Shown piece after piece: positions 15,712 to 58,067 of a stretch of DNA of 64,000 bases. Numbering within the stretch: the first letter of the stretch is position 1; the number at the start of each line of letters is the position of its first letter. A program made the position numbers and the translations under genes. Source of the DNA: Scyliorhinus canicula (Eukaryota); contig NC_052149.1 of NCBI RefSeq assembly GCF_902713615.1, positions 126,917,256 through 126,981,255 of the forward strand. The letters run 5' to 3'. The notes beneath the pieces are model-generated. The model was given only the letters and a program-made list of their open reading frames with translations, was not told where the DNA came from and did not search any database.

Positions 15712-16264
15712 AGGTACATCAGACTACACAATCCAGTCTGTGTACACAGGTACATAACACTTCACTCTCCAGTCTTTGTACACAGGTACATCACATTTCA
15801 CAATCCAGTCTGTGTACACAGGGACATCACACTTCACAATCCAGTTTGTGTACACAGGGACATCACACTTTACAATCCAGTCTGTGTACACAGGTACATC
15901 ACACTTCACAATCCAGTCTGTGTACACAGGTACATCAAACTTCACAATCCAGTCTGTGTGCACAGGTACATCACACTTCACAATCCAGTCTGTGTACACA
16001 GGTACATCACACTTCACAATCCAGTCTGTGTGCACAGGTACATCACACTTCACAATCCAGTCTGTGTGCACAGGTACATCACACTTCACAATCCAGTCTG
16101 TGTACACAGATACATCACACTTCACAATCCAGTCTGTGTACACAGATACATCACACTTCATAATCCAGTCTGTGTACACAGGTACATCACACTTCACAAT
16201 CCAGTCTGTGTACACAGGTACATCACACTTCATAATCCAGTTTGTGTACACAATCTAGTCTGTG
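15712..16264 (+). repeat. 36-bp minisatellite ACAATCCAGTCTGTGTACACAGGTACATCACACTTC, ~15 copies
   Basis: Direct reading; 12-aa periodicity in the ORF track. Confidence 0.95.
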
Positions 16265-17940: not shown

Positions 17941-18392
17941 AAACGTGTGAAAACAGTGAGGGATCCATCTCCTGGTAATAAAGCAATGAGAGAGGTCGGA
18001 CTATAAACATAACATCAGCAACGTCAGATAAAAATTTAGATTGGGGAGTTGCCGAGTCGCTTGCTGAATGTTTGGTAAATAATTAAATACTGAAAAAAAT
18101 CATTGAAGTAAAGTCACTGAAGCTTTTGTTGTGGGGGAAGAGAGAGAGAGCGAGAGAGGGTTACCCCTCGGGGGGTTTATGACCAGTGACAGACAGGGGC
18201 TGAGGAAATGGGAGTTTTGGTCGTTTATATTGTTCCTGTTGGTGAAAATCTCGAAGATTCCTTCCCCCCCCCCCCCCCCCCCCCCCCGCCCACCACCCCC
18301 ACCCCCACTGCTACTTGAAGTTTTGTTTAGAGTCTGAAAGTTTTAATCTGTTCAGATAAATGTTGTAAGAATGGAAATAAACAAATATTTAC

Positions 18393-30342: not shown

Positions 30343-31174
30343 CTTGTTGTTTGGAATGAGTGTGTGGGGAGTGAAGTGCGACTTTGCAGCAGCAGCTTGT
30401 CAGCCTCTCGACTGTCAATCCCGACTCCGGCAAATCCAACACCGTTTCCCGTTGGAATCAATTGTTTCCCACTTGGCACCGGTGCTAGCCCCATTAACGG
30501 CTAATGAATTGCTCCAGTCGCGCCCGCGCAGTTGACGGGCGCTGGTTGGGGACCGCTAAAGGAGGTCCCCGCGGCGATTCCCCACGGTTGACCAGCCGGG
30601 ATACCGCCGGCATGGTTCACGTATGGCTCCTTCCAATGGGAGATCGGCATCGCGGCTGCGGTGGCCGTCCTGGTGTGGGGAGTGGGCATCGGTCTCCGTA
30701 GGCGGGGGACCTCCACAACGGCCAGGCCCGCAATCGAGGCCCACCAATCGGAGTGCGCGGGCGATCACTGGTGAGGCGGGGCCTACCTTCTCCGTGCTGG
30801 ACCCCCTGTGGGATTCAGAATCGCTGGACCAAGAGGCCCGTTAAAGCCGGCGTGAAACACTTTGCCGCGTTTTTAGAGAATCCCGGCCACTGTCTTCCAG
30901 AAGCTCTTTTAATAATCTAATTATTGACTAAATGGTGAAAAGAGATTGTGAGGACAATGTTACCATGGAGATGAATGGGATACTGTAACCATGGTAGCAA
31001 GGTGATCAGAATGGATTGGGAAGAATAAACTCGGTTTTGCTGCCTCTACGTGGTTATATTGAGATCACATTTATGTTTCCTTAATAAACTGTGATTTAGT
31101 GGAAATGTATATGGACCATCGAGAAAAATGGACAAATTACTGTCAGACTTGTGAGTGAACAAAGGAACACACCA

Positions 31175-31820
31175 CACAGACTAGATTGTGAACTGTGATG
31201 TACCTGTGTACACAGACTGGATTGTGAAGTGTGATGTACCTGTGTACACAGACTGGATTGTGAAGTGTGATGTACCTGTGTGCACAGACTGGATTGTGAA
31301 GTGTGATGTACCTGTGTACACAGACTGGATTGTGAAGTGTGATGTACCTGTGTGCACAGACTGGATTGTGAAGTGTGATGTACCTGTGTACACAGACTGG
31401 ATTGTGAAGTGTGATGTACCTGTGTACACAGACTGGATTGTGAAGTTGTGGTAATACCACTGTATATATATGTGTGTGCCTGTATTAGGGGATGTACAAT
31501 AGTACCGGCTATTACAGGTTTGTCGAAAGCCGCTGCATAGTTTGTCGGTAAGCCGCTGCCGGCTAGCTCCGCCCACAGGAGCAGGATAAATATCCATGAG
31601 GTCTCCTGAGCTGCCATTTTACAGCTCCACTTGAGGTAATAACATCTCACGGTAATAAAGCCTCTTTTGTACCGTTTCGTGTTTCTGTGTGCAATTGTTA
31701 GCGCAACAGCACTGTGATGTGCTTGTATACGCAGACTGGATTGTGAAGTGAGATGTACCTGTGTACACAGACTGGATTGTGAAGTGTGACGTACCTGTGT
31801 AGACAGAGAGGATTGTAAAA
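31175..31820 (-). repeat. Second, inverted copy of the 36-bp minisatellite, split by an LTR-like insert
   Basis: Reverse complement of the unit at 15712-16264. Confidence 0.92.
31447..31708 (+). mobile_element. Short solo LTR-like insert
   Basis: TG...CA ends, AATAAA at ~31657; TSD not evident. Confidence 0.5.
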
Positions 31821-31828
31821 TGTGAGCA

Positions 31829-32584: not shown

Positions 32585-32830
32585 GGGTGCGGATGGAGGA
32601 GGCCTCCTGCAAGGGGACCCTCCAGGCATTGGCTCCAGCAGCACTCCCATCCCCTTCGGCAAAATATACATCAAGCCCAGGGGTAGCGGCCACACTGAAA
32701 CCGTGGGGCCCAATTACAGCAGCACTTCAGGCTGACTAGGATCTGCCCCGTGGCCCCCATCTGTGACAATCACAGATTCCCCCCCCCCCCCTCCCAGCCA
32801 TGCCAGACACCACCTTCAGCAAATGGAGAC

Positions 32831-33930
32831 AGGACAGGGTCACGCTGACAGTTAGGGGCTTTTACACAGGGCACAGAGTGGCAGCACTGGACAAACTGAC
32901 GGAGGACTGGGAACTGCCAACAGGACAGGGACACGCTGACAGTTAGGGGCTTTTACACAGGGCACAGAGTGGCAGCACTGGACAAACTGACGGAGGAATG
33001 GGAACTGCCAACAGGACAGGGACACACTGACAGTTAGGGGCTTTTACACAGGGCACAGAGTGGCAGCACTGGACAAACTGACGGAGGAATGGGAACTGCC
33101 AACAGGACAGGGACACGCTGACAGTTAGGGGCTTTTACACAGGGCACAGAGTGGCAGCACTGGACAAACTAACGGAGGAATGGGAACTGCCAACAGGACA
33201 GGGACACGCTGACAGTTAGGGGCTTTTACACAGGGCATAGAGTGGCAGCACTGGACAAACTGACGGAGGAATGGGAACTGCCAACAGGACAGGGACACGC
33301 TGACAGTTAGGGGCTTTTACACAGGGCACAGAGTGGCAGCACTGGACAAACTGACGGAGGAATGGGAACTGCCAACAGGACAGGGTCACACTGACAGTTA
33401 GGGGCTTTTACACAGGGCACAGAGTGGCAGCACTGGACAAACTGACGGAGGAATGGGAACTGCCAACCGGACAGGGACACGCTGACAGTTGGGGCCTTTT
33501 ACACAGGGCACAGGGTGGCAGCACTGGACAAACTGACGGAGGAATGGGATCTGCCAACAGGACAGGGACACGCTGACAGTTAGGGGCTTTTACACAGGGC
33601 ACAGAGTGGCAGCACTGGACAAACTGACGGAGGAATGGGAACTGCCAACAGGACAGGGACACGCTGACAGTTAGGGGCTTTTACACAGGGCACAGAGTGG
33701 CAGCACTGGACAAACTGACGGAGGAATGGGAACTGCCAACAGGACAGGGACACGCTGACAGTTAGGGGCTTTTACACAGGGCACAGAGTGGCAGCACTTG
33801 ACAAACTGACGGAGGAATGGGGACTGCCAACAGGACAGGGACACGCTGACAGTTAGAGGCTTTTACACAGGGCACAGAGTGGCAGCACTGGACAAACTGA
33901 CGGAGGAATGGGAACTGCCAACAGGAAAGG
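32831..33930 (+). repeat. 91-bp minisatellite, ~12 copies, derived from L1 ORF2
   Basis: AGGACAGGG recurs at 32831 and 32922; the last unit reads through into ...LDKLTEEWELPTGKEMKHLRIKHFLR. Confidence 0.92.
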
Positions 33931-34375
33931 AAATGAAACACCTGCGAATAAAGCACTTCCTCCGCAAAGAGACAGTCGGGTACCCCAGGGCCCCAGAGAC
34001 CACACTACTAAAGAACCTGATGAATACAGACAGTAAAGAAGGGGGAAAATATACAGACAGCTTCTGGACAGAGCCCGAACACCATTGGACGAGACCGGAT
34101 GGAAATGGGAAGATGAACTGGGGACAGATGTAGGGTGGGGACTCTGGAGCGAAGCACTGAGCAGGGCTAACTCCACCTCCTCCTGCGCAAGGCTCAGCCT
34201 AATGCAGCTCAAAGTGGTGCACAGAGCGCTCCTGACCAGAACCCGAATGAGCAGGTTCTTCCCGGATGTAGGGGATAAATGTGAACGGTGCCAGAGGGGC
34301 CTGGCCAACCACACCCATATGTTCTGGGCTTGCCCCAAACTTGCTGTGTTCTGGACAGCCTTCTCTGAGGCAATA

Positions 34376-34486
34376 GGGAGGCACAGTAACACAGTAATTA
34401 GCACAGTTGCTTCATAGCTCCAGGTCCCAGGTTCAATTCCCGGCTTGGGTCACTGTCTGTGCGGATTCTGCACGTTCTCCCCGTGT
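34376..34486 (+). mobile_element. SINE head fragment
   Basis: gcacagtaacacagtaattagcacagttgcttcatagctccagg...ggttcaattccc. Confidence 0.7.
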
Positions 34487-34974
34487 CAAATGCTGCCTCG
34501 ATTTCAAGGGCAGTCACTCTCAGAGAAGGAAGGGCTGGAGAGACACAAAAGAGACAATGCGGGAGGGAGGCCCCTCAGCCACCGCCCCCCTCCCCCCACC
34601 CCAGCCAATGGAGAAACATGGCCGAAGCCGACAGGGGGAAAAAAGAAAGAGGAGGGAGAAGGGGAGAAGAAGGGGGAAACCCCCACCCCCCCCATACCAG
34701 CCAGGGAGGTCACAAGGGGGGAGGGGAGGGGAGGGGCGGGCTGGTGGCGGGGGTGGGGGAGGACTACACTCCGAGCCAGATGGCGGCAGACTGCACACAG
34801 GAAAACTCAAGGGAAGGAAAAGACAAACCTTTCTGTGTTGTACAGTAAATGAACACGACCAGTAATGTATATAATTGTTTAGAATTCTTGAAAATACAAA
34901 TAAAATATTTTTTAATATACCCCACCTCACTCCCACCTTTCTCCACCCCTCCACTGTCGCTAAATTATCTGACT

Positions 34975-35890
34975 TGGGTTTCTCTGGTGGCCGACGGCGA
35001 AATCGCGTTCGGCCGGAGAACCAACATTTACGACGAAATTGGGGCGGCGGCGCTTTCGTGATACTCCGCCCCCTCCAACGCGGCCTGCTCGAGGGGTTCG
35101 CAGCATCGACAGCCTCAGGATGTTGCCTGAGGCCCTCCCCCCGATGCTCCGCCCCCTCCAATGCGGCCTGCTCGAGGGGTACGCAGCATCGACAGCCTCA
35201 GGATGTTGCCTGAGGCCCTCCCCCCCCCCGATGCTCCGCCCCCTCCAACGCGACCTGCTCGAGGGGTACGCAGCATCGACAGCCTCAGGATGTTGCCTGA
35301 GGCCCTCCCTCCCCCCCCCCCCCGATGCTCCGCCCCCTGCAATGCGGCCTGCTCGAGGGGTACGCAGCATCGACAGCCTCAGGATGTTGCCTGAGGCCCT
35401 CCCCCTCCCTCCCCCCGATGCATCGCCCTCGACCGGCCGAGTTCCCGATGGCGTTGGTCGCGTGTGCTGTGAATCGTGGGGAACTCGGTGTGGCGGCTGT
35501 GGACTCAGTCCATCACCGCCACAGTCGGGGGAGAGCCGATCCACGGGCAGGGGGGACTTTGGCAGGGGCTGGGGGCACTGTTAGGGGTTGGTCTGGGGGT
35601 AGCGAGTCGGCCAAAGGGGGGGCATTATTTTCCAGGTTGGGTCTGTGCGCGGCCGTCGCCTGGTTGTACGGAGCAGCCGCTGCAGGCCACCGCCGTGCGT
35701 ATGAGGGGCCACGGACGGCAATTCTCCGGGCCGTATCAGCAACTAAAGTCGGGTGCTCTACGCTGCCGGCATACTGGCACCCAGCCAGACGGAGGATCCG
35801 TGGCCGTTTTGCACCGAATATCCGGTCGTAAAACACCACCGTTCCCAAGCCGGCATCAGGACACAGCCGGAAAATCGGAAAATCCAACCC
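34975..35890. mobile_element. Harbinger-type non-autonomous element
   Basis: Similar to 24041-24700; ends GGAAAATCCAACCC. Confidence 0.65.
35058..35425 (+). repeat. ~90-bp tandem repeat, 4 copies, each with a GCCTCAGG-ATGTTG-CCTGAGGC hairpin
   Basis: GATGCTCCGCC-like starts at ~35060, 35143, 35230, 35324; length varies only in poly-C. Confidence 0.85.
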
Positions 35891-35999
35891 CTTATCCGAC
35901 ATCCAGCACTGGATCAGCTGAAATGTCCTCCAATTAAATATTGGGAATACTGAATCCATTGTTTTCAGCCCCCACTCCAAACTCAGTTCTCTAACTAGC

Positions 36000-36560
36000 T
36001 ACTCCATCCCTCTCCATGGTAACAGTCTGCCATTAAACTAGTCTCTTCACAACCTGGGGCTGACATTTAACCCCGAGCTGAGCTTCCGACCTCATATTGG
36101 TGACATCACTAACATGGCCTTCTTCCACCTCAGTAACATCGCTCAACTTCACCCGTCTCAGCTCATCTACTGCGGAAACCATCATCCATGTCTCCGTTAC
36201 CTCTGGACGTGACTATTCCAATACACTCCTGGCTGCTCTCCCACATCCTACCCTCCGGAAACATGAGCTCATCCAAAACTCTGCTGTCCCAGCCTGAACT
36301 CCCACCAAGTCCCGTTCCCCTATCACCCCCTGTGCTCACTGACCCACACTGACTCCTGGCCAAGCAATGTCTTGGTTTTAAAATTCTCATCCTTGTTTTC
36401 CAATCCCTCCATGTCCTCGCCCCTCCCTATCTCTGGAATCTCCTCCAGCCCCACAACCCTCCGAGATATCTGCGCTCCTCTAATTCTGGCCCCTTGTACA
36501 TTCCTGATCAGAATCGCTCCCCCATTGGTGGCTGTGCCTTCAGCTGCCATTGCCAAGGCC
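36000..36560 (+). mobile_element. Degraded L2/CR1-group LINE 3' fragment
   Basis: Homologous to 14100-14790. Confidence 0.55.
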
Positions 36561-36779
36561 TGTAGCCATCTGCCTGCGCACCCCACTGACCACCCACCAT
36601 GGCCCATGGCTGTGCAGAGCGTCACCGGCATACCCGCCCCCCCCCCCCCAACCCCCATCACCACCACCCGATCCCCAACCTCCCCCTCCCTTCTGACAGC
36701 CGGGCGCCACCCTGCTGGCGGGGCAACATGAGGCCCACCCAAGGAGAACGCCCACATGGGTTGTACCATCCACCGGTAC

Positions 36780-37740
36780 CCCTGCCGGCAGGAATGGGTG
36801 CCAGGGTCTGAGTATTCCATTACTCTCCTGACTTGTGCCCTGTAGATAGTGGGCAGGCAAGGAGTCAGGAGGTGGGTTACTCACCACATGACTTCCTAAC
36901 CTCTGACCTGTTCTTGTCGCCACAGTTTTTAGATGGCTCAACCAGTTCAGTTTCTGGTCAATGGCAACCCCAGGATGTTTAAAATGGGGATTTAGCAATG
37001 GCAATGCCAGTGAAAGACATGGAGCAATGTTTAACTTCCCTCTAGTTGGATGGGGTCACAGTGGTTAGCACTGTTGCTTCACAGCGCCAGGTTCCCAGGT
37101 TCGATTCCCCGCTGGGTCACTGTCTGTGAGGAGCCTACACGTTCTCCCCGTGTCTGCGTGGGTTTCCTCATGCAGTCCAAAGAGACGCAGGTTTGGTGGA
37201 TTGGCCATGCTGAATCGCCCTCATTGTCCAATACGGTCAGGAGGGGTTATTGGGTTACGGGGATAGGGTGGAAGTGAGGGCTTGAGTGGGTCGGTGCAGA
37301 ATTAATGGGCCGAATGGCCTTCGCCTGCACTGTGTGTTCTATGTTCTATGTCCTGGGTATGACTCCGACCAGCGGAGGGTTTCCCCCCTGATTCCCATTG
37401 ACACCAGTTTAGCTCAGGTTCCTTGATGCCATACTCGGTTAAATGCTGCCTCGATGTCAAAGGACAGTCACTCTGGCCTCACCTCTGGAGTTCAGCTCTT
37501 TTGTCCATGTTGAGCTGAGTGACTTTGGCAGGACCCAAACTGAGCATCAGTGAGCAGGTTATTGTGTAGCAAGTGGCACTTGATAGCATTGTTGATGATC
37601 CCTTTCATCATTTTGCTGATGATTGAGAGTGGGCTTATGGACGGTAATTGGCCGGATTGGATTTGTTCTGCTTTTTGTGTACAGGACATTTCTGGGGAAT
37701 TTTCCACATTGCTGGGTAGATGCCAGTGATGTATCTGCAC
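36780..37740 (-). mobile_element. CR1-like LINE RT fragments with a SINE (37051-37351, +, TGTTCTA tail)
   Basis: Matches 3620-4100; KMMKGIINNAIKCHLLHNNLLTDAQFG. Confidence 0.7.
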
Positions 37741-37836
37741 TGGAACAGCTCGTCCTGGAGCGGCGGGAGGAACCACCCGACTCAATAACCACCACCCGAC
37801 TCACTAACCAACCCACCCATCTGGCACCGTGTCCAA

Positions 37837-40800
37837 CTACCATCCTACCCAGCTATCACCCTACACAGCTATCACCCTAACCAGCTATCACCCTAACCAG
37901 CTATCACCCTACCCAGCTATCACCCTACCCAGCTATCACCCAACCCGGCTATCACCCTACCCAGCTATCACCCTCCCCAGCTATCACCCAACACGGCTAT
38001 CACCCTACCCAGCTATCACCCTACCCAGCTATCACCCTACCCAGCTATCACCCTACCCAGCTACCCACCCTACCCAGCTATCAACCTACCCAGCTACCCA
38101 CCCTACCCAGCTATCACACTACCCACCCTACCCAGCTAACACCCTACCCAGCTATCACCATACCCAGCTATCACCCTACCCAGCTATCACCCTACCCAGC
38201 TATCACCCTACCCAGCTACCATCCTACCCAACTATCACCCTACCCAGCTATCGCCCTACCCAGCTATCACCCTACCCAGCTATCACCCTATCCAGCTATC
38301 ACCCTACCCAGCTATCACCCTACCCAGCTACCATCCTACCCAGCTATCACCCTACCCAACTATCACCCTACCCAGCTATCACCCTACCCAGCTATCACAC
38401 TACCCAGCTATCACCCTATCCAGCTATCACGCTACCCAGCTATCACCCTACCCAGCTATCACCCTACCCAGCTATCATATTGCCCAGCTATCACCCTACC
38501 CAGCTATCATATTGCCCAGCTATCACCCTACCCAGCTACCCACCCTACCCAGCTATCACCCTACCCAGCTATCACCCTACCCAGCTATCACCCTACCCAG
38601 CTACCCACCCTACCCAGCTATCACCCTACCCAGCTATCACCATACCCAGCTATCACCCTACCCAGCTATCACCCTACCCAGCTATCACCCTACCCAGCTA
38701 CCATCCTACCCAGCTATCACCCTACCCAACTATCACCCTACCCAGCTATCACCCTACCCAGCTATCACACTACCCAGCTATCACCCTATCCAGCTATCAC
38801 GCTACCCAGCTATCACCCTACCCAGCTATCACCCTACCCAGCTATCATATTGCCCAGCTATCACCCTACCCAGCTACCCACCCTACCCAGCTATCACCCT
38901 ACCCAGCTATCACCCTACCCAGCTATCACCCTACCCAGCTACCCACCCTACCCAGCTAACACCCTACCCAGCTATCACCATACCCAGCTATCACCCTACC
39001 CAGCTATCACCCTACCCAGCTACCATCCTACCCAGCTATCACCCTACCCAACTATCACCCTACCCAGCTATCACCCTACCCAGCTATCACACTACCCAGC
39101 TATCACCCTATCCAGCTATCACGCTACCCAGCTATCACCCTACCCAGCTATCACCCTACCCAGCTATCATATTGCCCAGCTATCACCCTACCCAGCTACC
39201 CACCCTACCCAGCTATCACCCTACCCAGCTATCACCCTACCCAGCTATCACCCTACCCAGCTACCCACCCTACCCAGCTATCACCCTAACCAGCTATCAC
39301 CCTACCCAGCTATCACCCTACCCAGCTATCACCCTACCCAGCTATCACCCTACCCAGCTACCCACCCTACCCAGCTATCACCCTACCCAGCTATCACCCT
39401 ACCCAGCTATCACCCTACCCAGCTATCACTCTACCCAGCTATCGCCCTACCCAGCTATCATTTACCCAGCTAGCACCCTACCCAGCTATCACCCTACCCA
39501 GCTATCACCCTACCCAGCTATCACCCTACCCAGCTATCACCCTACCCAGCTACCCACCCTACCCAGCTATCACCCTACCCAGCTATCACCCTACCCAGCT
39601 ATCACCCTACCCAGCTATCACCCTACACCTACCCAGCTATCACCTACCCAGCTATCACCCTACCCAGCTACCCACCCTACCCAGCAATCACCCTACCCAG
39701 CTATCACCCCACCCAGCTGTCACCCTACCCATCTACCCACCATACCCAGCTATCACCCTACCCAGCTATCACCCTACCCAGCTACCCACCCTACCCAGCT
39801 ATCACCCTACCCAGCTATCACCCTATCCAGCTATCACCCTACCCAGCTGTCACCCTACCCAGCTATCACCCTACCCAGCTATCACCCTACCCAGCTACCC
39901 ACCCTACCCAGCTATCACCCTAACCAGCTATCACCCTACCCAGCTATCACCCTACCCAGCTATCACTCTACCCAGCTATCGCCCTACCCAGCTATCACCT
40001 ACCCAGCTATCACCCTACCCAGCTACCCACCCTACCCAGCTATCACCCTACCCAGCTATCACCCTACCCAGCTATCACCCTACCCAGCTATCACCCTACC
40101 CAGCTATCACCCTACCCAGCTATCACACTACCCAGCAATCACCCTACCCATCTACCCACCCTACCCAGCTATCACCCTACCCATCTACCCACCGTACCCA
40201 GCTATCACCCTACCCAGCTATCACCCTACCCAGCTATCACCCTACCCAGCTATCACCCTACCCATCTACCCATCCTACCCAGCTATCACTCTACCCAGCA
40301 AACACCCTACCCAGCTATCACCCTGCCCAGCTATCACCCTACCCAGCTATCACTTAAACCCATCTACCCACCCTACCCAGCTACCCACCCTACCCAGCTA
40401 TCACCCTACCCAGCTATCACCCTACCCAGATACCCACCCTACCCAGCTATCACCCTACCCAGCTATCACCCTACCCAGCTATCACCCTACCCAGCTATCA
40501 CCATACCCAGCTATCACACTACCCAGCTGACACCCTCCCCAGATATCACACTACCCAGCTATCACCCGACCCAGCTATCACCCTACCCAGCTATCAACCT
40601 ACCCAGCTATCTCCCTACCCAGCTATCACCCGACCCAGATATCACCCAACCCAGCTATCACCCTACCCAGCTAACTCCCTACCCAGCTATCACCCTACCC
40701 AACTATCACCCTACCCAGCTATCACCCTACCCATCTATCACCCTACCCAGCTACAAACCTTGCCCAGCTATCACCCTGCCCAGCTATCACCCTACCCAGC

Positions 40801-43800
40801 TATCCCCTACCCAGCTATCACCCTACCCAGCTATCACCCTACCCAGCTATCACCCTACCCAGCTATCACCCTACCCAGCTACCCACCCTACCCAGCAATC
40901 ACCTTACCCAGCTATCACCCTACCCAGCTATCACCCTACCCAGCTATCACCCTACCCAGCTATCACCCTACCCATCGGCCCACCCTACCCAGCTATCACC
41001 CTACCCATCTACCCACCCTACCCAGCAATCACCCTACCCAGCTATCACCCTACCCAGCTATCACACTACCCATCTACCCTCCCTACCCAGCTAGCACCCT
41101 ACCCATCTACCAACCCTACCCAGCTATCACCTTACCCAGCTATCACCCTACCCAGCTATCACCCTACCCAGCTATCACCCTACCCAGCTATCACCCTACC
41201 CAGCTATCACCCTGCCCAGCTATCACCCTACCCAGCTATCACCCTACCCAGCTATCACCCTACCCACCCTACCCAGCTACCACCCTACCCAGCTATCACC
41301 CTACCCAGCTATCACCCTACCCAGCTATCACCCTACCCAGCTATAACCCTAGCCAGCTGCCCACCCAACCCAGCTACCCACCCTACCCAGCTATCACCCT
41401 ACCCAACTATCACCCTACCCAGCTATCACCCTACCCAGCTATCACCCTACCCAGCTATCACCCTACCCAGCTATCACCCTACCCAGCTATCACCCAACCC
41501 AGCTATCACCCTACCCAGCTATCACCCTACCCATTTACCCACTCTACCCAGCTACCGCCCGAACCACCAGGCACCCTCCCACCTGCCACAGTACACAGCC
41601 ATCACCCAACCCAGCTATCACCCTACCCATCCACCCACCCTACCCAGCTATCACCCTATCCAGCTATCACCCTACCCAGCTATGAACCCACCCAGCTATC
41701 ACCCTACCCAGCTATCACACTACCCAGCTATCACCATACCCAGCTATCACCCTACCCAGCTATCAACCCACCCAGCTATCACCCTACCCAGCTATCACCC
41801 GACCCAGCTATCACCTTACCCAGCTATCACCCAACCAACCTACACACCCTACCCAGCTATCACCCTACCCAGCCATCACCCAACCCAGCTATCACCCTAC
41901 CCATCCACCCACCCTACCCAGTTATCACCCTACCCAGCTATCACCCTACCCAGCTATCACCCCACCCAGCTATCACCCTACCCAGCTACCCACCCTACCC
42001 AGCTATCACCCTACACAGCTATCACCCTACCCAGCTAACACCCTTCCCAGCTATCACCCTACCCAGCTATCACACTACCCAGCAATCACCATACCCAGCT
42101 ACAACCCTACCCAGCTATCACCCTACCCAGCTATCACCCTACCCAGCTATCACCCTACCCAGCTACCCACCCTACCCATCTACCCACCCTACCCAGCTAT
42201 CACCATATCCAGCTATCACCCTACCCATCTACCCACCCTACCCAGCAATCACCCTCCCCATCTACCCACCCTACCCAGCTACGCACCCTACCCAGCTACC
42301 CACCCTACCCAGCTATCACCCTACCCAGCTATCTCCCTACCCTGATATCACCCTACCCAGCTACCCACCCTACCCAGCTATCACCCTCCCCAGCTCTCAC
42401 CATACCCAGCTATCACCCTACCCAACCATCACCCAACCCAGCTATCACCCTACCCATCCACCCACCCTACCCAGCTATCACCCTACCCAGCTATCACCCT
42501 ACCCAGCTATCACCCTACACAGCTATACCCCTACCCAGCTATCACCCTACCCATCTACCCTCCCTACCCAGCTACACACCCTACCCAGCTATCACCCTAC
42601 CCAGCTTTCACCCTACCCATCGACCCTCCCTACCCAGCTACACACCCTACCCAGGTACACACCCTACCCAGCTATCACCCTACCCAGCTATCACCCTACC
42701 CATTTACCCACTCTACCCAGCTACCGCCCCGAACAACCAGGCACCCTCCCACCTGCCACACTACCGAGCCATCACCCAACCCAGCTATCACCCTACCCAT
42801 CCACCCACCCTACCCAGCTATCACCCTACCCAGCTATCACCCTACCCAGCTATCACCCCACCCAGCTACCACCCTACCCAGCTACCCACCCTACCCAGCT
42901 ATCACCCTACCCAGCTATCACCCTACCCAGCTATCACCCTACCCAGCTATCACACTACCCAGCTATCACCCTACCCAGCTACCCACCCTACCCAGCTATC
43001 ACCCTACCCAGCTATCACCCTACCCAGCTATCACCCTATCCAGCTATCACGCTACCCAGCTATCACCCTCCCCAGCTATCACCCTACCCAGCTATCATAT
43101 TGCCCAGCTATCACCCTACCCAGCTACCCACCCTACCCAGCTATCACCCTACCCAGCTATCACCCTACCCAGCTATCACCCTACCCAGCTACCCACCCTA
43201 CCCAGCTATCACCCTAACCAGCTATCACCCTACCCAGCTATCACCCTACCCAGCTATCACCCTACCCAGCTATCACCCTACCCAGCTATCACCCTACCCA
43301 GCTATCACCCTACCCAGCTATCACCCTACCCAGCTACCCACCCTACCCAGCTATCACCCTACCCAGCTATCACCCTACCCAGCTATCACCCTACCCAGCT
43401 ATCACTCTACCCAGCTATCGCCCTACCCAGCTATCATCTACCCAGCTAGCACCCTACCCAGCTATCACCCTACCCAGCTATCACCCTACCCAGCTATCAC
43501 CCTACCCAGCTATCACCCTACCCAGCTACCCACCCTACCCAGCTATCACCCTACCCAGCTATCACCCTACCCAGCTATCACCCTACCCAGCTATCACCCT
43601 ACCCATCTATCACCTACCCAGCTATCACCCTACCCAGCTACCCACCCTACCCAGCAATCACCCTACCCAGCTATCACCCCACCCAGCTGTCACCCTAACC
43701 ATCTACCCACCATACCCAGCTATCACCCTACCCAGCTATCACCCTACCCAGCTACCCACCCTACCCAGCTATCACCCTACCCAGCTATCACCCTATCCAG

Positions 43801-46800
43801 CTATCACCCTACCCAGCTGTCACCCTACCCAGCTATCACCCTACCCAGCTATCACCCTACCCAGCTACCCACCCTACCCAGCTATCACCCTAACCAGCTA
43901 TCACCCTACCCAGCTATCACCCTAACCAGCTATCACTCTACCCAGCTATCGCCCTACCCAGCTATCACCTACCCAGCTATCACCCTACCCAGCTACCCAC
44001 CCTACCCAGCTATCACCCTAACCAGCTATCACCCTACCCAGCTATCACCCTACCCAGCTATCACCCTACCCAGCTATCACCCTACCCAGCTATCACACTA
44101 CCCAGCAATCACCCTACCCATCTACCCACCCTACCCAGCTATCACCCTACCCATCTTCCCACCGTACCCAGCTATCACCCTACCCAGCTATCACCCTACC
44201 CAGCTATCACCCTACCCAGCTATCACTCTACCCATCTACCCATCCTACCCAGCTATCACTCTACCCAGCAAACACCCTACCCAGCTATCACCCTGCCCAG
44301 CTATCACCCTACCCAGCTATCACCCTACCCATCTACCCACCCTACCCAGCTACCCACCCTACCCAGCTATCACCCTACCCAGCTATCACCCTACCCAGAT
44401 ACCCACCCTACCCAGCTATCACCCTACCCAGCTATCACCCTACCCAGCTATCACCCTACCCAGCTATCACCATACCCAGCTATCACACTACCCAGCTGAC
44501 ACCCTCCCCAGCTATCACACTACCCAGCTATCACCCGACCCAGCTATCACCCTACCCAGCTATCAACCTACCCAGCTATCTCCCTACCCAGCTATCACCC
44601 GACCCAGATATCACCCAACCCAGCTATCACCCTACCCAGCTATCTCCCTCCCCAGCTATCACCCTACCCAACTATCACCCTACCCAGCTATCACCCTACC
44701 CATCTATCACCCTACCCAGCTACAAAGCTTGCCCAGCTATCACCCTGCCCAGCTATCACATTACCCAGCTATCCCCTACCCAGCTATCACCCTACCCAGC
44801 TATCACCCTACCCAGCTATCACCCTACCCAGCTATCACCCTACCCAGCTACCCACCCTACCCAGCAATCACCCTACCCAGCTATCACCCTACACAGCTAT
44901 CACCCTACCCAGCTAACACCCTTCCCAGCTATCACCCTACCCAGCTATCACACTACCCAGCTATCACCATACCCAGCTACAACCCTACCCAGCTATCACC
45001 CTACCCAGCTATCACCCTATCCAGCTATCACCCTACCCAGCTACCCACCCTACCCATCTACCCACCCTACCCAGCTATCACCATATCCAGCTATCACCCT
45101 ACCCATCTACCCACCCTACACAGCAATCACCCTCCCCATCTACCCACCCTACCCAGCTACGCACCCTACCCAGCTACCCACCCTACCCAGCTATCACCCT
45201 ACCCAGCTATCTCCCTACCCTGATATCACCCTACCCAGCTACCCACCCTACCCAGCTATCACCCTCCCCAGCTCTCACCATACCCAGCTATCACCCTACC
45301 CAACCATCACCCAACCCAGCTATCACCCTACCCATCCACCCACCCTACCCAGCTATCAGCCTACCCAGCTATCACCCTACCCAGCTATCACCCTACACAG
45401 CTATACCCCTACCCAGCTATCACCCTACCCATCTACCCTCCCTACCCAGCTACACACCCTACCCAGCTATCACCCTACCCAGCTTTCACCCTACCCATCG
45501 ACCCTCCCTACCCAGCTACACACCCTACCCAGGTACACACCCTACCCAGCTATCACCCTACCCAGCTATCACCCTACCCATTTACCCACTCTACCCAGCT
45601 ACCGCCCGAACAACCAGGCACCCTCCCACCTGCCACACTACCGAGCCATCACCCAACCCAGCTATCACCCTACCCATCCACCCACCCTACCCAGCTATCA
45701 CCCTACCCAGCTATCACCCTACCCAGCTATCACCCCACCCAGCTACCACCCTACCCAGCTACCCACCCTACCCAGCTATCACCCTACCCAGCTATCACCC
45801 TACCCAGCTATCACCCTACCCAGCTATCACACTACCCAGCTATCACCCTACCCAGCTACCCACCCTACCCAGCTATCACCCTACCCAGCTATCACCCTAC
45901 CCAGCTATCACCCTATCCAGCTATCACGCTACCCAGCTATCACCCTACCCAGCTATCACCCTACCCAGCTATCATATTGCCCAGCTATCACCCTACCCAG
46001 CTACCCACCCTACCCAGCTATCACCCTACCCAGCTATCACCCTACCCAGCTATCACCCTACCCAGCTACCCACCCTACCCAGCTATCACCCTACCCAGCT
46101 ATCACCCTACCCAGCTATCACCCTACCCAGCTATCACCCTACCCAGCTATCACCCTACCCAGCTATCACCCTACCCAGCTATCACCCTACCCAGCTATCA
46201 CCCTACCCAGCTATCACCCTACCCAGCTACCCACCCTACCCAGCTATCACCCTACCCAGCTATCACCCTACCCAGCTATCACCCTACCCAGCTATCACTC
46301 TACCCAGCTATCGCCCTACCCAGCTATCATCTACCCAGCTAGCACCCTACCCAGCTATCACCCTACCCAGCTATCACCCTACCCAGCTATCACCCTACCC
46401 AGCTATCACCCTACCCAGCTACCCACCCTACCCAGCTATCACCCTACCCAGCTATCACCCTACCCAGCTATCACCCTACCCAGCTATCACCCTACCCAGC
46501 TATCACCTACCCAGCTATCACCCTACCCAGCTACCCACCCTACCCAGCAATCACCCTACCCAGCTATCACCCCACCCAGCTGTCACCCTACCCATCTACC
46601 CACCATACCCAGCTATCACCCTACCCAGCTATCACCCTACCCAGCTACCCACCCTACCCAGCTATCACCCTACCCAGCTATCACCCTATCCAGCTATCAC
46701 CCTACCCAGCTGTCACCCTACCCAGCTATCACCCTACCCAGCTATCACCCTACCCAGCTACCCACCCTACCCAGCTATCACCCTACCCAGCTATCACCCT

Positions 46801-49800
46801 ACCCAGCTATCACCCTACCCAGCTATCACTCTACCCAGCTATCGCCCTACCCAGCTATCACCTACCCAGCTATCACCCTACCCAGCTACCCACCCTACCC
46901 AGCTATCACCCTAACCAGCTATCACCCTACCCAGCTATCACCCTACCCAGCTATCACCCTACCCAGCTATCACCCTACCCAGCTATCACACTACCCAGCA
47001 ATCACCCTACCCATCTACCCACCCTACCCAGCTATCACCCTACCCATCTACCCACCGTACCCAGCTATCACCCTACCCAGCTATCACCCTACCCAGCTAT
47101 CACCCTACCCAGCTATCACTCTACCCATCTACCCATCCTACCCAGCTATCACTCTACCCAGCAAACACCCTACCCAGCTATCACCCTGCCCAGCTATCAC
47201 CCTACCCAGCTATCACCCTACCCATCTACCCACCCTACCCAGCTACCCACCCTACCCAGCTATCACCCTACCCAGCTATCACCCTACCCAGCTATCACCA
47301 TACCCAGCTATCACACTACCCAGCTGACACCCTCCCCAGCTATCACACTACCCAGCTATCACCCGACCCAGCTATCACCCTACCCAGCTATCAACCTACC
47401 CAGCTATCTCCCTACCCAGCTATCACCCGACCCAGATATCACCCAACCCAGCTATCACCCTACCCAGCTATCTCCCTACCCAGCTATCACCCTACCCAAC
47501 TATCACCCTACCCAGCTATCACCCTACCCATCTATCACCCTACCCAGCTACAAACCTTGCCCAGCTATCACCCTGCCCAGCTATCACCCTACCCAGCTAT
47601 CCCCTACCCAGCTATCACCCTACCCAGCTATCACCCTACCCAGCTATCACCCTACCCAGCTATCACCCTACCCAGCTACCCACCCTACCCAGCAATCACC
47701 TTACCCAGCTATCACCCTACCCAGCTATCACCCTACCCAGCTATCACCCTACCCAGCTATCACCCTACCCATCGGCCCACCCTACCCAGCTATCACCCTA
47801 CCCATCTACCCACCCTACCCAGCAATCACCCTACCCAGCTATCACCCTACCCAGCTATCACACTACCCATCTACCCTCCCTACCCAGCTAGCACCCTACC
47901 CATCTACCAACCCTACCCAGCTATCACCTTACCCAGCTATCACCCTACCCAGCTATCACCCTACCCAGCTATCACCCTACCCAGCAATCACCCTACCCAG
48001 CTATCACCCTGCCCAGCTATCACCCTACCCAGCTATCACCCTACCCAGCTATCACCCTACCCACCCTACCCAGCTACCACCCTACCCAGCTATCACCCTA
48101 CCCAGCTATCACCCTACCCAGCTATCACCCTACCCAGCTATAACCCTAGCCAGCTGCCCACCCAACCCAGCTACCCACCCTACCCAGCTATCACCCTACC
48201 CAACTATCACCCTACCCAGCTATCACCCAACCCAGCTATCACCCTACCCAGCTATCACCCTACCCATTTACCCACTCTACCCAGCTACCGCCCGAACCAC
48301 CAGGCACCCTCCCACCTGCCACAGTACACAGCCATCACCCAACCCAGCTATCACCCTACCCATCCACCCACCCTACCCAGCTATCACCCTATCCAGCTAT
48401 CACCCTACCCAGCTATGAACCCACCCAGCTATCACCCTACCCAGCTATCACACTACCCAGCTATCACCATACCCAGCTATCACCCTACCCAGCTATCAAC
48501 CCACCCAGCTATCACCCTACCCAGCTATCACCCGACCCAGCTATCACCTTACCCAGCTATCACCCAACCAACCTACCCACCCTACCCAGCTATAACCCTA
48601 CCCAGCCATCACCCAACCCAGCTATCACCCTACCCATCCACCCACCCTACCCAGTTATCACCCTACCCAGCTATCACCCTACCCAGCTATCACCCCACCC
48701 AGCTATCACCCTACCCAGCTACCCACCCTACCCAGCTATCACCCTACACAGCTATCACCCTACCCAGCTAACACCCTTCCCAGCTATCACCCTACCCAGC
48801 TATCACACTACCCAGCTATCACCATACCCAGCTACAACCCTACCCAGCTATCACCTTACCCAGCTATCACCCTACCCAGCTATCACCCTACCCAGCTACC
48901 CACCCTACCCATCTACCCACCCTACCCAGCTATCACCATATCCAGCTATCACCCTACCCATCTACCCACCCTACCCAGCAATCACCCTCCCCATCTACCC
49001 ACCCTACCCAGCTACGCACCCTACCCAGCTACCCACCCTACCCAGCTATCACCCTACCCAGCTATCTCCCTACCCTGATATCACCCTACCCAGCTACCCA
49101 CCCTACCCAGCTATCACCCTCCCCAGCTCTCACCATACCCAGCTATCACCCTACCCAACCATCACCCAACCCAGCTATCACCCTACCCATCCACCCACCC
49201 TACCCAGCTATCACCCTACCCAGCTATCACCCTACCCAGCTATCACCCTACACAGCTATACCCCTACCCAGCTATCACCCTACCCATCTACCCTCCCTAC
49301 CCAGCTACACACCCTACCCAGCTATCACCCTACCCAGCTTTCACCCTACCCATCGACCCTCCCTACCCATCTACACACCCTACCCAGGTACACACCCTAC
49401 CCAGCTATCACCCTACCCAGCTATCACCCTACCCATTTACCCACTCTACCCAGCTACCGCCCAAACAACCAGGCACCCTCCCACCTGCCACACTACCGAG
49501 CCATCACCCAACCCAGCTATCACCCTACCCATCCACCCACCCTACCCAGCTATCACCCTACCCAGCTATCACCCTACCCAGCTATCACCCCACCCAGCTA
49601 CCACCCTACCCAGCTACCCACCCTACCCAGCTATCACCCTACCCAGCTATCACCCTACCCAGCTATCACCCTACCCAGCTATCACACTACCCAGCTATCA
49701 CCCTACCCAGCTACCCACCCTACCCAGCTATCACCCTACCCAGCTATCACCCTACCCAGCTATCACCCTAACCAGCTATCACCCTACCCAGCTATCACCC

Positions 49801-50600
49801 TACCCAGCTATCACCCTACCCAGCTACCCACCCTACCCAGCTACTCACCCTACCCATCTACCCACCCTACCCAGCTATCACCCTATCCAGCTATCACCCT
49901 ACCCATCTACCCACCCTACCCAGCAATCACCCTCCCCATCTACCCACCCTACCCAGCTACGCACCCTACCCAGCTACCCACCCTACCCAGCTATCACCCT
50001 CCCCAGCTCTCACCCTACCCAGCTATCACCCTACCCAGCTATCACCCTACACAGCTATACCCCTACCCAGCTATCACCCTATCCATCTACCCTCCCTACC
50101 CAACTATCACCCTACACACCTCCCCACCCTACCCAGCTACACACCCGACCCAGCTATCACCCTACCCGGCTATCACCCTACCCAGCTATCACCCTATCCA
50201 GATATCACCCTACCCATCTATCACCATACCCAGCTGTCACCCTACCCATCTACCCACCCTACCCAGCTATCATCCTACCCAGCTATCACCCTACTCAGCA
50301 ATCACCCTACCCAGCTATCACCCTACCCAGCTACCCACCCTACCCAGCTATCACCCTACCCAGCTATCACCCTACCCAGCTATCACCCAACCCAGCTATC
50401 ACCCAACCCAGCTATCACCTTACCCAGCTATCACCCTACCCAGCTATCACCCTACCCAGCTATCACCCTACCCAGCTTTCACCATACCGATCTACCCACC
50501 CTACCCAGCCATCACCCGACACAGCTACCACCCTACCTATCCACCCACCCTACCTAGCAATCATCCTACCCAGCTATCAGAGTACTCAGCTATTACCCTC
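37837..50600. repeat. 12.8-kb satellite of a 16-bp monomer CTATCACCCTACCCAG (minus: GGGTAGGGTGATAGCT), ~800 monomers, with higher-order structure
   Basis: Direct reading; diagnostic variants recur at ~6.7-6.8 kb offsets. Confidence 0.97.
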
Positions 50601-50804
50601 CTCTCTTGCCACCTTACCCACCTCCCTACCCTTCTCTCTTACCTCACTCATGTCCCCACCCTCCTCACTTACCTCACGCACCACCCCACTTGCATGCCCT
50701 CACACACCCATTGTCTCAGACATTCGAACATTGAGCAGCTTTGTGATCTTTAAACTTACCAGAATATGGCAGCTATCGGTGTAAAAAGGGCAGGTGGACG
50801 CTCT

Positions 50805-53075
50805 GTGGTATTATCACTGGGCCAGTAATCCAGAGAGCTCAGGCTAATGCTCCCACTGGCAGCACCCAGCAGTAGCAGAGGCGCATTGATATACCGCCGG
50901 GAGGGAGTTACCCTGGGAGTCCTGAACATCAACTCAGGACACCATGAAATGCCATGGCATCAGGTCAAACCCAGACAAGGAAACCTCATGTTGATTACCA
51001 CGTACCGTCAATCCCTTAACTGATGAATCATTACTCCTCCATGTTGAACACCACTTGGAGGAAGCACTGAGGGTGGCAAGGGCACAGAATATACTCTGGA
51101 TGAGAGAGTTCAATGTCCATCCCCAAGAGTGGCTCAGTAGTACCACCACAGACCGAGCTGGCCGGAGTCATAAAGGACATAGCTGCTGGACTGGGACTGC
51201 AGCAGGTGGTGAGGGAACCAACAAGAGGGATAAACTTACTTGACCTCATCCTCACCAACCTGCCTGCCACAGATACATCTGTCCATGGCAGCATCAATAG
51301 GAGTGAGCACCGCACAGTCCTTGTGGGGACAAAATCCCATCTTCACATTGAGAATATCCTCCATCATGTTCTGTGACACTATCACCGTACTAAATGGGAT
51401 AGACTTTGAACAGATCCAGAAACTCAAGACTGGGCATCCATGAGGTGCTGTGGGTCATCATCAGCAGCAGAATTGGACTCAACCACAAACTGCAACCTCA
51501 TGACTGCATATCCCCCACTCTACCATTCCCACCAACCCAGGGGATCAACCCTGATTTAAAGAAGAGTGCAGGAGTGCATGCCAGGAACAACACCAGGCAC
51601 ACCGAAAAATGAGGTGTCAACATCCTAAACCTACAACACAGGATTACCTGCCTGCCAAACAGCATAAGCAACAAGTATTAGACAGAGCTCAGCAATAGAT
51701 CCATAACCAACAGGTCAGATCTAAGCTCTGCAGTCCTTCCACATCCAGCCATGAATGGTTGTGGACAATTAAACAACTCACTGGGGTAGGAGGCTCCACA
51801 AAGATCCCCATCCTCAATGATGGGGGAGCCCAACACATAAGTGCAAACAATAAGGCTGAAGCAGTCATAAAACTCTTCAACCAGAAACGCTGAGTGGATG
51901 ATCCATCTGGGTCTCCTCCGGAGGTCTTCAGCATCACCGATATCAGTCTTCAGCCAGTTTGATTCACTCCACGTGATATGAAGAAACAGCTGAAGGCTCT
52001 GGATGCTGCAAAGCCTATGGGTCCTGACAACATCCCAGCGATAGTACTGAAGACGTGTGCCCCAGAACATGCTTCACGCCTAGCCAAGCTGTTCCAGTAC
52101 AGCTACAACACTGGCGTCTACCCGACAATGTGGAAAGTTGGCCAGGTGCGTCCAGTACACAGGAAACAGGACAAATACAACCCAGCTAATTATCACCCAG
52201 TCATTCTGCTCTCAGTCATTAGCATCATGATGGAAGGTGTCATCAACAGTGTTATCAGCGGCTCTTAGCAATAATCTGCTCACTGAGGCCCAGTTTGGGT
52301 TTCACGAGGGTAACTCAGCTCCTGAACTCATTCCAGCCTTGGTTCAAACATAGACAAAGGTGCTAAACTCTCGAGGTGAGGTGAGAGTGACTGCCCTTGA
52401 CTGAGTTTGGCATCAAGGAACCCAAGCAAAACTGGACTCAATGGGAAGCAGTGGGAAAAGTCTCTCCTGATTGGAGCCATACATGGCACAAAGGTGGATG
52501 GTTGTGGTTGTTGGAGGTCAATCATTTCAGTTCCAGGACATCACTGCAGGAGTTCCTCAGAGTAGTGACCTAGGCCCAACAATCTTCTGTTGCTTCATCA
52601 ATTACCTTCCTTCAATCATAACGCCAGAGGTGGGGATGTTCCTGAATGACTGCACAATGTTCAGCACCATTCACGACTTCTCAGATACTGAAACTATCCC
52701 TGTGTAAATGCAGCAAGACCTAGTCAATATCCAGGCTTGGGCTGAAAAGTGGCAAGTAACACTTGCATCAAACATGTGCCAGACAATGGCCATCACCAAC
52801 AAGAATGAATCTAACTGCTGCCCCTTTCAATGTCATTACCATTGCTGAATGCCCCATTTTCAACATCCTGGGGGTTATCATTGAGCAGAAACTGAACTGG
52901 ACCATCCATATCAATACTGTGCTTAACAAAACTCATCAAAGGCTGGGAATCCTACGGCGAGTAACTAACCTCCTGACTCCCCAAACCCTGTCCACCATGG
53001 ACAAGACACAAGTCAGGAGTGTGATGGAATACTCTCCACTTGCCTGGATGAGTGCAGCTCCAACCACCCTCACCT
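50805..53075 (+). mobile_element. Degraded CR1-like LINE beginning with a tRNA-like head remnant
   Basis: 50805-50852 TGGTATTATCACTGGGCCAGTAATCCAGAG matches the head at 13523-13470; then EN and RT (GVPQSSDLGPTIFCCFINYLPS). Confidence 0.8.
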
Positions 53076-56399: not shown

Positions 56400-57206
56400 G
56401 GTTCAAAAACAGCTTCTTCCCCGCTGTTACCCGACTCCTGAATGACCCTCTTATGGACTGATCTGATCTCTTCACACATCTTCTCGACTGAGTAATACTA
56501 CACTCCTGTATGCTTCATCCAATGCCGGTAGCTATGTATTTACATTGTTTTTTTTCATGAATGGAATGATTTGTCTGGACTATGCGCAGAACAATACGTT
56601 TCACTGTACCTCGGTACACGTGACAATAAAACAAATCCAAACCCAAGGATGGAGTGCTGGCCACACAACAGGCCGAGGAGGAGGAGGAGGAGGAGGAGGT
56701 GCAAAGGAGGTGCCACATGGGGCCTCATGTGTACCGGCAGCGCCTGACATTCGAGGACCTGCCGGACCGGGTATGCTGTCGAAGTCTCCGGGTGATCAGG
56801 GGACAGTGCGGAATTTCTGCCAGATCATGATGCTCCAGGCACCATCAATAGGAGAGGACACACGCTCCCAATGGTCGTCAAGGTGACGGTCGCCCTGTAC
56901 CTTTACGCCATGGTGTCCTTCCAGGCTCGAGTGGGATCCAGTCTGGGATCTCACAGAGCTCGGTGCAAAGGTACATCCACGTTGTCACGGAGGACCTATA
57001 TCCCCAGAAGCCACAATATATCCATTTCAATGTGGCCCATGCCCACCACGATACATCGCTGGGATACCCCGGGTCAAGGAGAGATCAATGGGGTGCATGT
57101 CCTCCTGCGAACATTTGCAGATGACAGGCCGCTCTACACAAACCGAAAGGGGTTCCACTCGATGAACATGCAGCTGGTGTGTAACCATCAGCTGAGCATC
57201 ACACAC

Positions 57207-58067
57207 AACTGTGCCCAATACCCGGGCAGTGTGCACAACGTCTTCATCATAAACAACTGTGCCCAATACCCGGGCAGTATGCACAACGTCTTCATCATAC
57301 ACAACTGTGCCCAATACCCGGGCAGTGTGCACAACGTCTTCATCATATACAACTGTGCCCAATACCCGGGCAGTGTGCACAACGTCTTCATCATACACAA
57401 CTGTGCCCAATACCCGGGCAGTGTGCACAATGTCTTCATCATACACAACTGTGCCCAATACCCGGGCAGTGTGCACAACGTCTTCATCATACACAACTGT
57501 GCCCAATACCCGGGCAGTGTGCACAATATCTTCATCAGACACAACTTTGCCCAATACCCGGGCAGTGTGCACAACGTCTTCATCATAAACAACTGTGCCC
57601 AATACCCGGGCAGTGTGCACAAAGCCTTCATCATAAACAATTGTGCCCAATACCCGGGCAGTGTGCACAACGTCTTCATCATACACAACTGTGCCCAATA
57701 CCCGGGCAGTGTGCACAAAGCCTTCATCATAAACAACTGTGCCCAATACCCGGGCAGTGTGCACAACATCTTCATCATACACAACTGTGCCCAATACCCG
57801 GGCAGTGTGCACAACGTCTTCATCATACACAACTGTGCCCAATACCCGGGCAGTGTGCACAACTCCTTCATCATACACAACTGTGCCCAATACCCGGGCA
57901 GTGTGCACAACGTCTTCATCATACACAACTGTGCCCAATACCCGGGCAGTGTGCACAACGTCTTCATCATACACAACTGTGCCCAATACCCGGGCAGTGT
58001 GCACAACGTCTTCATCATACACAACTGTGCCCAATACCCGGGCAGTGTGCACAACTCCTTCATCCTG
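57207..58067 (+). repeat. 48-bp in-frame tandem repeat, 18 copies (NCAQYPGSVHNVFIIH)
   Basis: First unit 57207, 18th unit 58023 (17 x 48 exactly, no net indel). Confidence 0.97.

Follow-up and report, generated by a model that had tools for sequence, protein, structure and literature searches.

The 12.8-kb tandem array described here is best read as a non-coding, G-rich and strand-asymmetric satellite with a minisatellite-sized repeat unit, a reading to which we give a probability of roughly 0.7 and which was judged on this one array beside immunoglobulin (Ig) genes. The array lies in a window of 64,000 nucleotides of Scyliorhinus canicula DNA (the whole stretch that was analysed), on the sense strand of kappa light-chain genes, and a preliminary description had likened it to an Ig switch (S) region. 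That likeness stands for composition (AGCT density, G-richness and predicted G4 structures) and fails for position and for preservation of the AGCT motif. The caveat attached to the same description, that the array could be an ordinary satellite, proves the better-supported reading in light of its satellite anatomy, its blocks of unequal exchange and its LINE flanks. A role for the array in the action of AID is unproven.

A long and even 16-bp array with satellite anatomy

TRF recovers a single tandem array at positions 37833–50599 (minus strand), with a period of 16, 790.9 copies (approximately 791 monomers), 87% matches and 2% indels, confirming that the G-rich 16-bp array first reported from inspection of the sequence is real. 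The consensus 16-mer reads CCAGCTATCACCCTAC on the plus strand and GGGTAGGGTGATAGCT on the minus strand. Base counts over the 12,767 minus-strand positions (6440 G, 3262 T, 2256 A and 809 C, that is, 50.4% G and 6.3% C) likewise bear out the claim of a G-rich, C-poor monomer on the Ig sense strand. This composition is even over the whole 12.8 kb, and GC skew stays between -0.76 and -0.80 across all full 1-kb bins of the array. Motif counts give 289 exact consensus monomers, 49 occurrences of a 17-mer variant, GGGTAGGGTGGGTAGCT, and 598 matches to the 16-mer when two or fewer mismatches are allowed, compared with 0.05 expected by chance. Within the 64-kb window, no copies of the 16-mer were found on the minus strand outside the array. 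The units are non-coding; TAG and TGA stops close each of them on the minus strand, and a search of the protein collection gave no homologue of the peptide that the plus-strand ORFs would encode. An exact two-monomer query gave zero matches among metagenome contigs, and the 16-mer, in any rotation tried, was not found in the literature.

The internal structure of the array is that of a tandem repeat reshaped by recombination. Two overlapping 3.7-kb blocks (41640–45367 and 44520–48266, minus strand, spanning 41640–48266) are 94% identical at an offset of approximately 2.9 kb, against a background of 88%, and a further pair of 6-kb blocks is 91% identical at an offset of approximately 6.7 kb; these kilobase-scale duplications are traces of unequal exchange. 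Shorter-range periodicities are present at 81 and 97 bp. Upstream, at the minus-strand 5' edge, the monomers give way to degenerate G-rich repeats of 30 bp (2.6 copies, 50611–50689, minus strand), into which the array decays, and a 19-bp G-rich repeat (2.1 copies, 37772–37810, minus strand) lies at the downstream (minus-strand 3') edge. Replication slippage together with unequal exchange would have grown such an array and would keep its monomers homogeneous.

Position relative to the kappa light-chain genes

The V-kappa exon (DIIMTQSP...YYCQQ) lies at 1202–1500 on the minus strand and carries a recombination signal sequence (RSS) with its heptamer at 1195–1201, a 12-bp spacer and a nonamer at 1174–1182. 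The J-kappa segment (FGKGTKL; 753–826, minus strand) has a nonamer at 818–826, a 23-bp spacer and a heptamer at 788–794; this 23-spacer RSS and J sit approximately 400 bp downstream of the V exon, and the V/J pair is unrearranged. Because the V segment carries the 12-spacer RSS and the J segment the 23-spacer RSS, the arrangement has kappa polarity, in agreement with the initial identification of shark kappa light-chain genes whose V segment is 36 kb from the array. The best protein matches to V come from bamboo shark and cloudy catshark (83–91% identity). In a separate observation, kappa light-chain genes were located in Chiloscyllium punctatum, Scyliorhinus torazame and Hemiscyllium ocellatum. 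The C exon belonging to the V/J pair falls beyond the window start. The window as a whole is devoid of C-domain motifs, and its sense strand carries no C exon downstream of the array. The array itself is intergenic, 5' of V-kappa and separated from every C exon by over 13 kb.

Flanking LINEs, repeat context and possible origins

Both flanks of the array are LINE fragments. On one side, a 5'-truncated fragment comprising a reverse-transcriptase part (36861–37750, minus strand) points away from the array and shows 69–77% identity to the LINE at 52087–52980 and to 3975–4080. On the other, a fragment of the same family (50864–52980, plus strand) also points away and is 80% identical to 5266–3589. 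Both are assigned by their resemblance, at the nucleotide level, to the LINE at 3.6–5.3 kb, which carries reverse transcriptase; the short ORFs in the flanks have no match in Pfam. The two flanking LINEs are diverged copies in head-to-head arrangement, each with its 3' tail facing outward, and neither flank shows a promoter or a unique island. Reverse-transcriptase ORFs occur elsewhere in the window at 3.7, 9.1, 25 and 63 kb, and 29% of the window consists of tandem arrays, nine of them in addition to the 16-bp array. All nine lack AGCT and any comparable skew, so that the 16-bp array is unusual in combining the two, which counts against the ordinary-satellite reading. Regions dominated by simple tandem repeats have been reported in elasmobranch genomes.

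We consider it improbable that the array derives from telomeric repeats, which would make it an interstitial telomeric sequence, or from repeats internal to a transposable element (TE). TAGGG occurs 592 times, one half of the monomer (GGGTAGGGT) resembles a telomere variant, and LINE fragments adjoin both array ends. Against a telomeric origin, the 12.8 kb contain just 11 copies of TTAGGG, never in runs, and no canonical run is seen at the edges, so the caveat that the array might be a telomere-derived (TAGGG) satellite is unsupported; with (TTAGGG)n runs absent from the array, we rejected its identification as an interstitial telomeric sequence. Against a TE origin, the window's other LINE copy (3.6–5.3 kb) lacks a 16-bp array, and the divergence and outward orientation of the flanking copies led us to reject the array as either a LINE 3' tail or a LINE 5' monomer array.

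The array could also be imagined to serve the architecture or regulation of the kappa locus, for instance as a cluster boundary, as a G4-associated replication origin or barrier, or as a heterochromatin block that insulates neighbouring clusters and helps them to be expressed one at a time. Its placement between two clusters, its strong strand asymmetry and its high predicted G4 potential would all suit such an element. We nevertheless regard this as unlikely: co-duplication of a neutral satellite explains the same facts.

Under the satellite reading that we prefer, the array would be a neutral occupant of DNA rich in TEs and tandem repeats. It sits between two clusters of kappa light-chain genes, and segmental duplication probably copied it along with those clusters. 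Arrays of 12–14 kb capable of forming G4s and R-loops, lying in the same orientation along the locus, would be likely to provoke germline non-allelic exchange and replication stalling, and may in this way cause entire kappa clusters to be gained and lost.

Switch-like measures and a possible AID target

An S region is expected to be a 1–10-kb tandem repeat array with dense AGCT/WGCW hotspots for AID, and a working one occupies a transcribed intron between a J or I exon and a C exon and undergoes germline transcription. On density, the catshark array performs well: AGCT occurs 648 times (5.08 per 100 bp, 13-fold denser than elsewhere in the window) and WGCW 675 times, placing its AGCT density below that of mouse S-mu (7.68) and above that of mouse S-gamma3 (2.19). 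One AGCT per 16 bp had been claimed, and the counted spacing is wider, at one per 19.7 bp; the accompanying statement that most monomers carry the motif, giving several hundred sites, agrees with our figure of approximately 82% of monomers. In addition, the S-mu core string AGCTGGGT is present inside the 16-bp monomer.

G-richness follows the same pattern. G makes up 42–58% of each 100-nt window of the array, G-cluster zones cover 83% of it, and the mean G4Hunter score is 1.195. The claim that the array forms G4s holds as far as folding prediction goes, which yields one G4 for each monomer pair; the consensus pair does not satisfy the strict rule, because its loops measure 2, 8 and 2 and the G3N1-7 limit is 7. 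For this reason no more than 115 non-overlapping motifs pass the strict rule, most of them located at the 17-mer variant, and 330 are found when loops of 1–12 are allowed.

These measures make it conceivable that AID targets the array somatically: activated B cells would transcribe it in the Ig sense direction, R-loops or G4s would form with the G-rich strand as the non-template, and AGCT sites would be deaminated and broken. Light-chain clusters could then be deleted or exchanged, in a light-chain parallel to class switching or to locus suicide recombination. The AGCT density within the mouse range, the G-clustering and predicted G4s, and the coincidence of the G-rich strand with the Ig sense strand are all in keeping with such a role, as are the recombination between shark IgH clusters that reviews describe as proceeding without classical S regions, and the mammalian like-switch repeats taken up below.

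Several observations nonetheless make this proposal very unlikely. Within the array, AGCT is conserved no better than other monomer positions: its C ranks second in variability among the 16 (11.8%, chiefly C to A), the motif shows no sign of preservation, and the T flanking it and the G runs vary by only 1–5% across monomers. On the satellite reading, the switch-like values are accounted for by one 16-bp unit being repeated 790 times, rather than by selection for AID targeting. The LINE flanks offer no promoter or unique island, and the consensus monomer contains no CpG. In mouse, moreover, it is proximity to an enhancer and transcription, rather than repeat sequence, that govern AID targeting of S regions.

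Position argues in the same direction. We rejected the array as an S region by location, since it is intergenic in a light-chain locus, outside the J–C intron and far from both V and any C exon. Light-chain loci do not class-switch.

RNA data add weak negative evidence. In raw reads from four RNA runs totalling 6.2 billion letters (poly-A/oligo-dT libraries from unspecified tissues), where the comparison covered 250 bp of the array edge, depth was 0 in all four runs over 37852–37985 and at most 0.53, in run X21 only, over 37986–38100, although the repeats neighbouring the array pile up reads in those same runs. Among approximately 20 probable RNA contig sets (poly-A selected, from unspecified tissues), the share of array words was 0.00–0.01. 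Array RNA is near-absent from the available poly-A data. This speaks only weakly against transcription, given the unspecified tissues, the poly-A selection and a read comparison confined to the 250-bp edge. Mammalian S regions, being intronic, would likewise be thin in poly-A RNA data.

A broader version of the proposal, in which each shark kappa cluster carries a 12–14-kb array 3' of its C exon that is sense-transcribed and cut by AID in activated B cells, permitting cluster deletion or exchange and possibly serving as a reservoir of S-region sequence, appears more doubtful still. Any recurrence of such arrays at kappa clusters would follow from segmental duplication by itself and would weigh as a single observation. 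Finally, although assemblies often mis-size long satellites, inflation or collapse of the array as an assembly artefact is scarcely credible: it contains zero Ns, unique words account for 51% of its 64-mers, and its variant monomers are grouped in distinct ordered blocks, as in a genuine long-read assembly of a diverged array, so that its existence is not in doubt and its exact length alone could be off.

Implications

Finding AGCT density and G-richness of the S-mu kind in a shark array indicates that such sequence readily arises as a satellite. Composition alone therefore cannot identify a switch region, and switch-like arrays need positional and functional tests. Were AID to use arrays of this kind, S-type targets would date back to cartilaginous fish and extend to light chains. 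Even if the arrays are neutral, 12-kb G4-prone repeats in the same orientation along the locus could explain the multiplication and loss of kappa clusters.

Comparison with known systems

Mammalian S regions such as mouse S-mu and S-gamma3 share with the catshark array a kilobase-scale tandem organization, G-richness on one strand, G-clusters and predicted G4 potential, and the core of mouse S-mu is built from the same short string that is found within the shark 16-mer. The two differ in setting: mammalian S regions are intronic and lie 5' of C exons, whereas the shark array occupies intergenic DNA of a light-chain locus, shows no visible promoter or I exon and yielded no detected transcript in the RNA data described above. 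Compared with S-mu, it is also longer and more uniform (12.8 kb of near-uniform 16-mers). According to reviews, S regions are lacking in cartilaginous fish.

A second point of comparison is the 3' regulatory region of mammalian IgH, whose like-switch repeats lie downstream of the constant genes and are used in locus suicide recombination. Those repeats reside within a transcribed super-enhancer and recombine with S-mu, in contrast to the shark array, which has no known enhancer, transcription or partner S region; any link between the two would be one of analogy only.

Amphibians are the first lineage reported to have S regions, and Xenopus S-mu, like the shark array, carries AGCT palindromes in tandem repeats. 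The Xenopus region, however, is AT-rich, functions independently of G-richness and lies in the J–C-mu intron, whereas the shark array is G-rich and intergenic.

The human minisatellites CEB1 and CEB25 are likewise non-coding, asymmetric in G and C between strands, and G4-forming, with units of tens of base pairs or fewer. Both are hypervariable and unstable through replication and recombination, dynamics that the internal block duplications of the shark array fit. Relative to CEB1 and CEB25, the shark unit is shorter (16 bp) and its array much longer (12.8 kb), bringing it nearer to a satellite, and it alone among the three is built from units that bear AGCT.

Structure and placement of the array

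The G-rich repeat forms one tandem array, at 37833-50599, in which Tandem Repeats Finder resolves 790.9 copies at period 16 (87% matches, 2% indels), with a unit reading GGGTAGGGTGATAGCT on the minus strand. Over its 12,767 positions that strand holds 6440 G, 3262 T, 2256 A and 809 C (50.4% G, 6.3% C), bearing out the preliminary description of G-rich 16-mers on the Ig sense strand, and GC skew stays between -0.76 and -0.80 across all full 1-kb bins. We counted 289 exact consensus monomers, 49 copies of a 17-mer variant, GGGTAGGGTGGGTAGCT, and 598 matches to the unit at no more than two mismatches, where chance predicts 0.05; outside the array, the minus strand of the window carries no copy of the unit. 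The array holds 648 AGCT sites (5.08 per 100 bp), a density 13 times that of the remainder of the window, so that the several hundred sites proposed earlier are present, at one per 19.7 bp rather than the proposed one per 16 bp. The array-encoded peptide found no match in a protein collection, nor did an exact two-monomer query in metagenome contigs.

Near the start of the window, a minus-strand ORF at 1120-1620 contains a V-set domain (DIIMTQSP...YYCQQ; Pfam E = 4e-18), the best relatives of which are antibody light-chain V domains in PDB and immunoglobulin kappa light chain-like proteins from five shark species. On the same strand, the 3' end of the V exon carries a V-kappa recombination signal (RSS) of heptamer, 12-bp spacer and nonamer, and a J-kappa segment lies approximately 400 bp downstream, with its own RSS of nonamer, 23-bp spacer and heptamer (CAGTGTG, against the consensus CACTGTG) followed by FGKGTKL. 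The two segments, spanning 753-1500, are unrearranged and constitute a cluster of kappa polarity with its C exon beyond the window start; no Ig C-domain motif was found anywhere in the window. The nearer end of the array is 36 kb from V on its 5' side, and the V/J placement upholds both this position and the identity of the G-rich strand as the Ig sense strand. Upstream of the V exon, at a distance of approximately 1.2 kb, lies a 23-bp minisatellite (2750-3137; 16.9 copies, 82% matches).

G4 and R-loop potential

Two consensus units yield a G4 with loops of 2, 8 and 2, and as a result the strict rule (loops of 1-7) recovers only 115 motifs, mostly at the 17-mer variant; allowing loops up to 12 raises the count to 330. 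Folding with ViennaRNA, with G-quadruplexes enabled, predicts a three-tetrad G4 per pair of units, so the G4-forming character suggested at the outset stands as a prediction for unit pairs, and is confined mainly to the variant under the strict rule. G4Hunter scores average 1.195 over the array and reach 1.2 in half of its 25-nt windows. G content is 42-58% in all 100-nt windows, and G-cluster zones, of the kind used for predicting R-loop initiation, cover 83% of the array.

Evolution of the array and its surroundings

When every unit is aligned to the consensus by wrap-around, variation is greatest at position 11 (A to G in 24%, the 17-mer variant) and at position 15, the C of AGCT, where 11.8% of units differ, mostly by C to A. 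The runs of G and the final T vary by only 1-5%, and thus AGCT is not specially preserved within the unit. On a larger scale, identical 64-mers reappear at offsets of approximately 2.9, 3.9 and 6.7 kb. Self-alignment gives 94% identity across 3.7 kb for the offset of approximately 2.9 kb and 91% across 6 kb for that of approximately 6.7 kb, compared with 88% when offsets are chosen arbitrarily. Such blocks above background are a signature of satellite-like growth by kilobase-scale unequal exchange.

The surroundings are rich in repeats: nine other tandem arrays occur in the window, tandem arrays in total make up 29% of it, and reverse-transcriptase ORFs appear at four places. Three further long minisatellites, 54 bp x 31 at 16262-17941, 91 bp x 12 at 32829-33930 and 48 bp x 18 at 57197-58064 (92-97% identity), all lack AGCT. 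Arrays of a 36-bp unit at 31174-31446 and 31713-31825 have a consensus that is the reverse complement of that at 15711-16252, approximately 15 kb away; these may represent an inverted duplication, or arrays at the two ends of one large element. The GC-rich stretch at 6000-12000 (55-59% GC, G skew +0.25 to +0.35), which includes a 416-aa plus-strand reverse-transcriptase ORF at 9102-10352 (RVT_1, E = 2e-36), is probably one long LINE, and an ORF at 55748-56353 matches the ALKBH8_N model (E = 9e-9).

Degenerate G-rich repeats mark both edges of the array, beyond which lie fragments of one LINE family: a 5'-truncated minus-strand copy at 36861-37750 on the flank that is downstream in the minus-strand sense, and a plus-strand copy at 50864-52980 on the upstream flank, both resembling another copy, located at 3.6-5.3 kb, with a reverse-transcriptase domain. 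Since the flanking copies are diverged (69-77% alike) and arranged in head-to-head orientation, each with its 3' end directed away from the array, an origin as a LINE tail or LINE promoter array is ruled out.

Transcription

Read-run searches with the array returned matching DNA runs in two organisms and no RNA runs, and its sampled words reached a share of only 0.00-0.01 in approximately 20 probable RNA contig sets from the same species. We also mapped the raw reads of four RNA runs, three of them oligo-dT and one single-cell poly-A (6.2 billion letters in total), to 34100-38100 at 90% likeness. The array edge included there is near consensus, and reads from any satellite copy would be expected to land on it. 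In these poly-A-selecting libraries from unspecified tissues, depth was 0 on both strands in all four runs at 37852-37985, and at most 0.53, in a single run, at 37986-38100, while hundreds of reads piled up on other repeats, among them a SINE at 37048-37315. The pile-ups, at 37048-37315, 34368-34501 and 36378-36511, fall on both strands and consist of partly aligned reads, mostly 90-95% alike, with loose ends resembling a tRNA-derived SINE head; they represent high-copy expressed repeats and not local transcription. The absence of RNA over the array is negative evidence of limited weight, given poly-A selection, unspecified tissues and the poor sequencing of G-rich repeats. In poly-A-selected data, coverage would likewise be thin over the S regions of mammals, which are intronic.

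Origin of the array and comparison with switch regions

Taken together, the unequal-exchange blocks and the repeat-rich context favor, with a probability of roughly 70%, the caveat already attached to the preliminary description: an ordinary G-rich satellite, which would have arisen in intergenic, repeat-rich DNA, grown by unequal exchange, and been copied along as kappa clusters duplicated. Long, same-orientation, G4-prone arrays would favor non-allelic exchange and replication trouble, and may in this way contribute to the gain and loss of kappa clusters in the germ line. That the array instead serves as an architectural element appears improbable, and the telomere-derived variant is not supported, TTAGGG occurring only 11 times in the array.

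The switch-like resemblance in composition is confirmed. In 129Sv mice, the S-mu intron has 432 AGCT in 5625 bp (7.68 per 100 bp) and the S-gamma3 intron 108 in 4918 bp (2.19 per 100 bp), a range that includes the array's density; core S-mu is described in the same paper as a multimer of AGCT(G)GGGT, and AGCTGGGT is present in every unit of the array. These statistics most likely follow from one 16-bp unit. A role as a somatic target of AID in B cells is very unlikely: of the functional marks accessible to testing the array shows none, and that mouse study finds AID targeting to be set by enhancer proximity and transcription, not by repeat sequence. According to reviews, cartilaginous fish have no switch regions, and nurse sharks nonetheless combine a VDJ from one heavy-chain cluster with the C of a different cluster. 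The reviews place the first S regions in amphibians, where they are AT-rich, whereas the shark array is G-rich.
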